A DNA stretch of 63,640 nt, filler included, from Lenisia limosa (lineage: Eukaryota; Protista; Breviatea): NCBI GenBank assembly GCA_001655205.1. It is 17 parts of 17 records of this genome, joined end to end, with 100 filler letters (N's around TTAATTAATTAA, not from the genome) between each part and the next. Parts side by side here need not be neighbours in the genome. Positions count along the whole stretch, not along the records: positions 62,470 to 63,640 come from LPNZ01009525.1; 16 more parts are not named here. The stretch is one strand, 5' to 3'. The translations under genes were made by a program, and so were the position numbers. Below the pieces are notes generated by a model that was not told where the DNA came from, made no database searches, and was given only the letters and a program-made list of their open reading frames with translations. Shown piece by piece: positions 62,239-63,640 of the stretch. Position 1 is the first letter of the stretch, and every line of letters starts with the position of its first letter.

Positions 62239-62651
62239 GTTCGTGGGGGTCGACCTGATACTTCTTTGCATTTCATCCCTCCCACCACTAAACTTCGTGT
62301 GTTTCTCAAATATTTAGCCGACAAAGTCGATTCTTGTTTTGTTTTTTTGTTTATTAAATTGTCCTCGTTNNNNNNNNNNNNNNNNNNNNNNNNNNNNNNN
62401 NNNNNNNNNNNNNTTAATTAATTAANNNNNNNNNNNNNNNNNNNNNNNNNNNNNNNNNNNNNNNNNNNNACCTTGTGTTGTCTCAGGGTTTTGTTTCTCT
62501 CTTTTTACTCCGCATTCAAAAAACAGTATTTTACCAAAGCGACTGACCTGACCTGGGCTTGGTTTTGTTGTTCTCAAACCTTGTGTGTTATCAGCCAACA
62601 GATTTGGCTTTTTTTTGTTTCATAAATTTTCAAATTTACCCCCCCTCCCAG

Positions 62652-63350
62652 GAGCTAGGCCGTACCAAGAAGCAGCTGACTGAGACCAACGCCCGTCTTC
62701 GCGAGGTCAAAACCACCAACCAAATGACCATGAGAGAGGTGAGCGGTGCATTTCACTACTAAACATACCACCCCCACTCTCCTTTGACCCTAAGTTTCCC
62801 AGAATTACTCTCTCCCCGTTGGTTGCTCATATTTGTTATTGCTTGTTTTTTTTTGTTTGTTTGGAGTTTCAGATTATTCGGTTCGTGATTAGTACCAATC
62901 TCATCGAAATTTCCTTCGTTTTACTCCCCTCCCCAGGCCTCCGATAAGCTATCTTCTGAGCTCAATGAGAAACAGTCTCTCCAAGCTGCTCTCCAGGACT
63001 CTAAGCAGGAGTGGGGGGGGGGGGTATNNNNNNNNNNNNNNNNNNNNNNNNNNNNNNNNNNNNNNNNNNNNNNNNNNNNNNNNNNNNNNNNNNNNAGATC
63101 AAGAGCATCTTTATACTGCAATCACACTCCTAATTTAGTAGTTACCAAATCTGGATCAACAGCTTTTTATCTCAGATCTAGATCATCTTTATGCTGTTTT
63201 CAACAATAATAATGAAAACAACCACATTCCTAATTTGGCAGTTACCAAATCCGGATAAAAAAGATGCGACTCCAGCTCCAGAGTGCCGAAAAGTCCCTGT
63301 GGAACCTTCAGTCGGAGGCCCAGGAAATGGAAGAGTTGCACCGCAAGAGG
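62652..63350 (+). CDS. Coiled-coil protein exons
   Basis: Exons 62652-62738 (ELGRTKKQLTETNARLREVKTTNQMTMRE), 62937-63010 (ASDKLSSELNEKQSLQAALQDSKQ) and ~63276-63350 (LQSAEKSLWNLQSEAQEMEELHRKR). Confidence 0.65.
62845..62936 (+). repeat. Intron 3'-end module A (reference copy)
   Basis: TTGTTTGTTTGGAGTTTCAGATTATTCGGTTCGTGATTAGTACC..TCGAAATTTCCTTCGTTTTACTCCCC..AG. Other copies: 1891-1964(+), 2285-2343(+, partial), 4228-4335(-), 5990-6111(-), 6729-6790(-), 16940-17045(-), 59560-59665(-). Confidence 0.92.
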
Positions 63351-63640
63351 GTGGGCACCTACCATGTATTATTTATATTAGTATTGTGATAATACTACAT
63401 TGCAGTATTTCTTATAAGCGATGGGGCGGACGGCTTCGGCCAGATATAACCTTGTGTGTGTCTTTACGCTTCTGCATATTTCTATTCGTTGTATGCTGGA
63501 GTGATGGGATGTACTGCAGAAACGACTGGCCTGGGCTTTCTTTTGTTGAACCTCTCTTGTGTTGCTCCAACAGAGTTGATTTTGGACTTTTTTTTTGTTT
63601 CACAAATTTGCCCATCTTACTCCCCACCCCCTAGGCTGAC

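Follow-up and report, generated by a model that had tools for sequence, protein, structure and literature searches.

Introners are recognised by similarity between introns that reaches the intron boundaries but not the exons, and 1,093 introner families in 201 species have been reported (Gozashti et al. 2025, PMC12130899). Assignment to such a family was based on all-versus-all BLAST matches with E < 1e-5, on similarity reaching both boundaries, 5′ with 5′ and 3′ with 3′, and on at least four copies in different paralogy groups (PMC12130899). Some introners carry the 3′ splice site themselves and have the 5′ site provided by the sequence at the point of insertion, as in Symbiodinium microadriaticum (Gozashti et al. 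2022, PMC9860276), and the introner elements of Amoebophrya possess inverted repeats of 8–20 nt joining the 5′ and 3′ ends as well as direct repeats of 3–5 nt at their borders (Farhat et al. 2021, PMC7789003).

In the present study introns of Lenisia limosa were compared with these systems. The window, i.e., the whole stretch of DNA analysed, comprises 63,640 nt of assembly GCA_001655205.1, filler included, and our interest lay in positions 62470–63640 (LPNZ01009525.1), which consist of two contigs (62470–63027 and 63096–63640) with Ns between them. A preliminary description had marked positions 63400–63634, which correspond to the 3′ four-fifths of intron D below, and had proposed that long introns are assembled from ordered modules: GT with a G-rich run, then a module E, then a module B with a C-run and AG. 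The features of this piece are as follows.

62470–62651, plus strand: intron A, 3′ part, with its 5′ end beyond the piece edge; GC 0.40; the AG at 62650–62651 stands after a C-rich tract and is followed by the in-frame exon 1.
62548–62651, plus strand: module B, copy 1, 104 nt, the end of which is the acceptor AG of intron A.
62652–62738, plus strand: exon 1, 87 nt, 29 codons, phase 0-0; an open frame between the acceptor with C-run and AG and the donor GAG/GTGAGC.
62739–62936, plus strand: intron B, complete, 198 nt, starting with GTGAGC and lacking the main body of module B.
62937–63023, plus strand: exon 2, firm up to 63010–63011; 87 nt and phase 0 if the GT at 63024–63025 is the donor.
63013–63024, plus strand: run of twelve Gs (G12 run) adjoining the N gap, followed by TAT up to 63027.
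63028–63095, no strand: N gap between the two contigs, the real length and content of which are not given by the Ns.
63096–63263, plus strand: intron C, 3′ part, interrupted by the N gap, with an A-rich end and without module B.
63264–63350, plus strand: exon 3, 87 nt, 29 codons, phase 0-0.
63351–63634, plus strand: intron D, complete, 284 nt, from GTGGGC to CCCCCTAG, with its acceptor AG at 63633–63634.
About 63403–63447, plus strand: module E, a G+C-rich patch in intron D.
63526–63634, plus strand: module B, copy 2, 109 nt, the end of which is the acceptor AG of intron D.
63635–63640, plus strand: first 6 nt of exon 4, the rest of which lies beyond the piece edge.

Taken together, the piece reads as part of one gene for a coiled-coil protein on the plus strand, with GT–AG introns and phase-0 exons of 87 nt. 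G+C content amounts to 51–57% in the exons and 33–42% in the introns, and the exon peptides are heptad-patterned and coiled-coil-like. In protein searches the exons were used singly; no Pfam family was found on exons 1–3, and exon 3 (30 aa) had no true relative among 1.84 billion representative proteins. Its sole ‘significant’ match, P0002 (2109 aa; E 5.5e-9, 39% identity), is a translated tandem repeat, the E-value of which is inflated because of repetition and does not indicate homology. An ORF of 147 aa (63191–63631, plus strand) crosses exon 3 and intron D in a frame other than that of the exon; it is listed as a public ‘protein’ from one ENA contig of 1373 nt and reflects a prokaryote-type gene prediction wrongly applied to eukaryotic DNA. 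Exons 1, 2 and 3 are consecutive and each measure 87 nt (29 codons) in phase 0-0, exon 2 only with the donor at 63024. Three such exons in a row are unlikely to occur by chance, and their equal length and phase suggest a periodically built coiled-coil gene. A cluster of mutually exclusive exons was ruled out, because the equal-sized exons bear no similarity to each other (32–36% ungapped DNA identity, 1–5 identical residues).

The similarity between introns is centred on module B, the description of which as ending with a C-run and AG proved to be real. Local alignment of introns A and D scored 58 versus 19 ± 2.6 in dinucleotide-preserving shuffles (z = 15), and in the same comparison the remaining intron pairs, aligned on both strands, all stayed at or below z = 2.1. 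Global alignment of 62548–62651 with 63526–63634 gave 78 matches, 20 mismatches and 17 gap columns, colinear up to the acceptor AG (z = 13.4; 0 of 500 shuffles as good), which corresponds to 80% identity over aligned bases (78/98) and 68% with indels counted. With blastn, 73 of 106 positions were identical at E = 2e-7 in a search space of two sequences, a match of 39 bits that would fail genome-wide. Conserved blocks, including a 9-mer and an 8-mer, are situated 60–105 nt upstream of the AG and are separated by variable spacers. Upstream of module B a weak colinear similarity of the two introns, maybe from 63449, reaches the piece edge (z = 2.4–2.9; 10/500 and 8/500 shuffles as good; one 9-mer common on the same diagonal); the length shared by A and D is at least 105 nt and perhaps at least 182 nt. 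Module B is a genuine repeat, well beyond chance, sense-polarised and with the acceptor included. As it extends up to the AG, it includes that dinucleotide as well as the C-rich tract and the presumed branch site (TTAC, at ~14–16 nt from it).

Two further observations concern the same introns. When 63416–63525 is set beside 62537–62547, a segment of 104 nt in intron D (63422–63525), which folds into a hairpin (z = -2.05), lies between AAGCGA and AAACGA, and in intron A AAGCGA directly adjoins module B; sequence flanked by short direct repeats may have been inserted or lost here, the signal being too weak to interpret. An internal duplication of intron A (62470–62526 versus 62577–62651) was considered and dropped as not significant (z = 1.6).

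Module B also includes a small hairpin (62594–62608 and 63566–63586), with GCCAA...TTGGC in A and TCCAA...TTGGA in D. Conserved blocks with variable spacers and a hairpin altered on both sides between the copies would suit a functional intronic element under selection, for instance one that regulates splicing or forms a small structured RNA. However, the two-sided change (G-C in A, T-A in D) is a single covarying pair and possibly due to chance, folding energy was no better than that of shuffles for A (z = +1.8) and marginal for D (-1.6 to -2.0; whole intron D -1.6, unexceptional), and the best score in Rfam 15, 16.4 bits with E = 9.7 versus a gathering score of 50, indicated no credible family, so that we consider selection for such a function highly improbable. 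A host of structured RNA or snoRNA was likewise discarded after Rfam and folding gave nothing, and a tRNA-derived SINE after ARAGORN found 0 tRNA genes. A SINE or MITE inserted into existing introns would resemble the present case in being a short non-coding repeat common to introns, but here the repeat ends with the acceptor in both copies instead of at an arbitrary internal position, and a tRNA-like head, terminal poly(A) and inverted repeats are lacking.

At their very ends three introns are alike, the last 35–40 nt being common to A, B and D (B-D with 29 identities, z = 3.8; A-B with z = 2.8). A C-rich tract precedes three of the four acceptors, intron C being A-rich there instead. A motif of TAC with a C-rich decamer behind it was counted five times along the sense strand, versus 0.22 expected, and none of 1000 shuffles reached five; three of these motifs belong to acceptors, and the other two lie within intron B. 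The latter, at 62766–62778 and 62806–62818, are located upstream of the real one and may be decoy branch/acceptor regions or relics of duplicated tails.

Such tails could be conceived of without any common descent, as an extended 3′ splice signal of the organism (TTAC, C-rich tract and AG) combined with T-rich low complexity. Some protists, such as Trichomonas and Giardia, have fused branch-site/acceptor motifs, and in the piece TTAC, C-run and AG are found at three of four acceptors, including that of intron B without the body of module B. A signal of this kind explains the last ~20 nt, but neither the colinear, non-repetitive blocks 60–105 nt upstream nor an A-D similarity of z = 13–15 against composition-preserving shuffles, and intron C splices without the motif; an origin of the tails without shared ancestry is hence judged decidedly unlikely. 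The ~105-nt 3′ end common to A and D probably goes back either to an ancient repeat carried by introns or to a duplication within the gene of which it is a remnant.

That the locus duplicates in tandem is evident from intron C, which contains its own 3′ segment twice, at 63096–63173 (78 nt) and 63174–63263 (90 nt), with ~80% column identity, one 22-nt indel, and TTAC and AG in each copy. This is direct evidence that intron C was lengthened by ordinary local tandem duplication. Growth or gain of introns through tandem duplication in the genome is a described process (e.g. PMC4974935), to which the 3′-terminal duplicate with its branch-site-like TTAC and AG corresponds, as do the equal-sized phase-0 exons, which suggest duplicated gene units; unlike in that process, however, the similar introns A and D lie three exons apart and not adjacent, and the intervening exons are unrelated.

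Since all visible copies are found in one gene with 87-nt phase-0 exons, internal gene duplication has to be regarded as a serious alternative. The gene would have been built by tandem duplication of a unit of exon plus intron or of several exons, and A, B and D would derive from one ancestral intron, their 3′ parts kept to different degrees. Equal exon length and phase (exons 1 and 3, and exon 2 with the donor at 63024), the same orientation of the copies within the same gene, the tandem duplication in intron C and the distance of three exons between A and D, which fits a three-exon super-repeat, all agree with paralogous introns. Introns normally decay faster than exons, yet here exons 1–3 are dissimilar while 100 nt of intron are similar. 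This objection is weaker than it looks, as the relevant exons lie beyond the piece: flanks comparable across A and D are limited to the 6 nt of exon 4, which differ from the first bases of exon 1 (very weak evidence), and the exon before A lies beyond the edge. A further point against paralogous introns is that intron C, situated between A and D, is without module B. Overall, paralogy is the main rival to the reading proposed next, and we hold it to be somewhat unlikely.

From the sequence it appears plausible, and is tentatively proposed here, that the tails of A, B and D are old, diverged and differently truncated copies of one intron-borne, introner-like element with its own 3′ splice signals. 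A single element, introner-like or a transposon-derived intron end, would supply the branch site, the C-rich tract and the AG, and its copies would have been kept or truncated to different extents on the 5′ side, whereby the order ‘E before B’ would represent the internal order of one longer element and not parts gained singly. On this view the element would be mobile or would once have been so, would occur outside this gene as well, and would have given rise to these introns instead of inserting into existing ones. The A-D homology, the shared tails of A, B and D, the excess of the motif, the sense polarity and the stop at the acceptor speak for an introner-like element. So does the graded sharing (at least 105 nt in A-D, ~35–40 nt in B), which fits a common 3′ terminus with varying 5′ extent, and so do exons 1–3, which are dissimilar while the introns are similar. 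Against it stand the facts that every copy was seen in one gene, in which equal 87-nt exons point to internal duplication, that the 5′ parts of introns B and D are unrelated, and that no more copies were retrieved from JGI, GTDB and IMG/VR.

Compared with known introners, above all those that bring the 3′ splice site with them, the introns of this piece are similar in showing sense-oriented intron-intron similarity up to the exon boundary, acceptor included, in being non-coding and in measuring ~200–300 nt. They differ in that only two to three copies, 20–30% diverged, are present in one gene, with no evident target-site duplication or terminal inverted repeat; no target-site duplication stood out beyond a generic AG/G. 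Similarity reaches the 3′ boundary in A-D and B-D, and is absent from the 5′ boundary in B versus D, the 5′ end of A being beyond the piece. Any mobility must be old, because the copies have diverged to 68% identity with indels.

The stop at the acceptor and the occurrence of both copies in sense within the same gene could also result from copying between introns of this gene, by reverse splicing into the same transcript or by gene conversion. In Oikopleura, near-identical introns within one gene have reportedly been found and explained by intron-to-intron copying. The copies here, however, are only ~70–80% alike, and reverse splicing should copy the whole intron, whereas B and D share the tail only; such copying is quite improbable here.

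Searches for copies in other collections bear on the introner-like reading as follows. The two-block pattern of module B gave one chance match among JGI metagenome contigs, in an unrelated sequence of 50–55% G+C to which the similarity did not extend further. GTDB genome contigs yielded zero matches, and three patterns gave matches of seed length only in IMG/VR; all of these collections may lack this organism. A word search with the 147-aa ORF, a method very insensitive for non-coding repeats, found only the ORF itself.

The remaining parts of the proposed kit are module E and the G-rich run. E is a single copy in 62470–63640, the only other match being 19 nt at 74% (62524–62542), and it had no Rfam match, contained no tRNA and was absent from the viral contigs of IMG/VR. 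As E occurs once there, the order E before B in this piece has n = 1. The ‘GT + G-rich run’ module comes down to the single G12 run at the contig end, introns D and B starting with GTGGGC and GTGAGC, respectively. Exon 2 has two candidate donors, GT 63011 and GT 63024. The former resembles the GTGGGC of intron D but makes exon 2 end in phase 2, which does not fit exon 3 if the gap contains no further exon; the latter is the sole in-phase GT donor, with an exon 2 of 87 nt in which the G-run codes for Trp-Gly-Gly-Gly. The G12 run may be exonic, intronic, or a homopolymer/poly-G assembly artefact at the contig end.

Read on the minus strand, the G12 run gives the TAC and C-run motif, and it could form a strong duplex (about -30 kcal/mol) with the C-rich tails of A, B and D, the value for the tail of its own intron C being only -8.5. 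A more elaborate model would make the long introns one composite non-coding mobile element, the ends of which are inverted copies (GT + G-run + GTA and TAC + C-run + AG) supplying both splice sites and the branch site, with E and B in the interior, all stages of 5′ truncation and internal duplication, and the G12 run (63013–63026) as the visible left end; we consider this unlikely. The claimed 5′ G-run and 3′ C-run would form an end-to-end inverted repeat like that of the Amoebophrya elements. In contrast to these, the ends of introns B and D pair at the level of shuffles, intron D shows no terminal inverted repeat, the intron with the G-run has an A-rich visible 3′ end, and all splice sites here are canonical GT-AG. 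Pairing of 5′ and 3′ ends yielded a best duplex of -15.5 kcal/mol in intron D, with 82/500 shuffles as good, and in intron B 461/500 shuffles were as good; pairing of a G-run with a C-run across the intron was discarded for both complete introns. Because of this and because intron D is without a terminal inverted repeat, an architecture of ends that pair is unsupported and survives only as a lead.

Of the initial proposal, the statement that long introns share polarised sequence holds for the 3′ ends (at least 105 nt in A-D, the last 35–40 nt in B), and the alignments are fairly described by the words ‘fragments of one composite element’. The piecemeal gain of a polarised kit was not borne out by this piece, with E-B at n = 1, an ambiguous G-run and an intron C that grew by tandem duplication. 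The piece likewise lends no support to a bimodal distribution of intron lengths or to the G-run as a part of the kit. Nor is an ‘undescribed system’ at hand, because intron families similar up to the splice sites are already known as introners.

At best, the introns of this piece belong to an old, degraded introner-like family; at worst, the gene is an ordinary periodic one. If paralogy is true, the piece amounts to no more than an unremarkable coiled-coil gene of periodic build. If copies of module B turn out to be scattered among unrelated genes, they would represent a further introner-like family that brings along its branch site, C-rich tract and acceptor and whose age would allow the decay and lengthening of such introns to be followed; this would extend a phenomenon known from ~200 species rather than open a new one.
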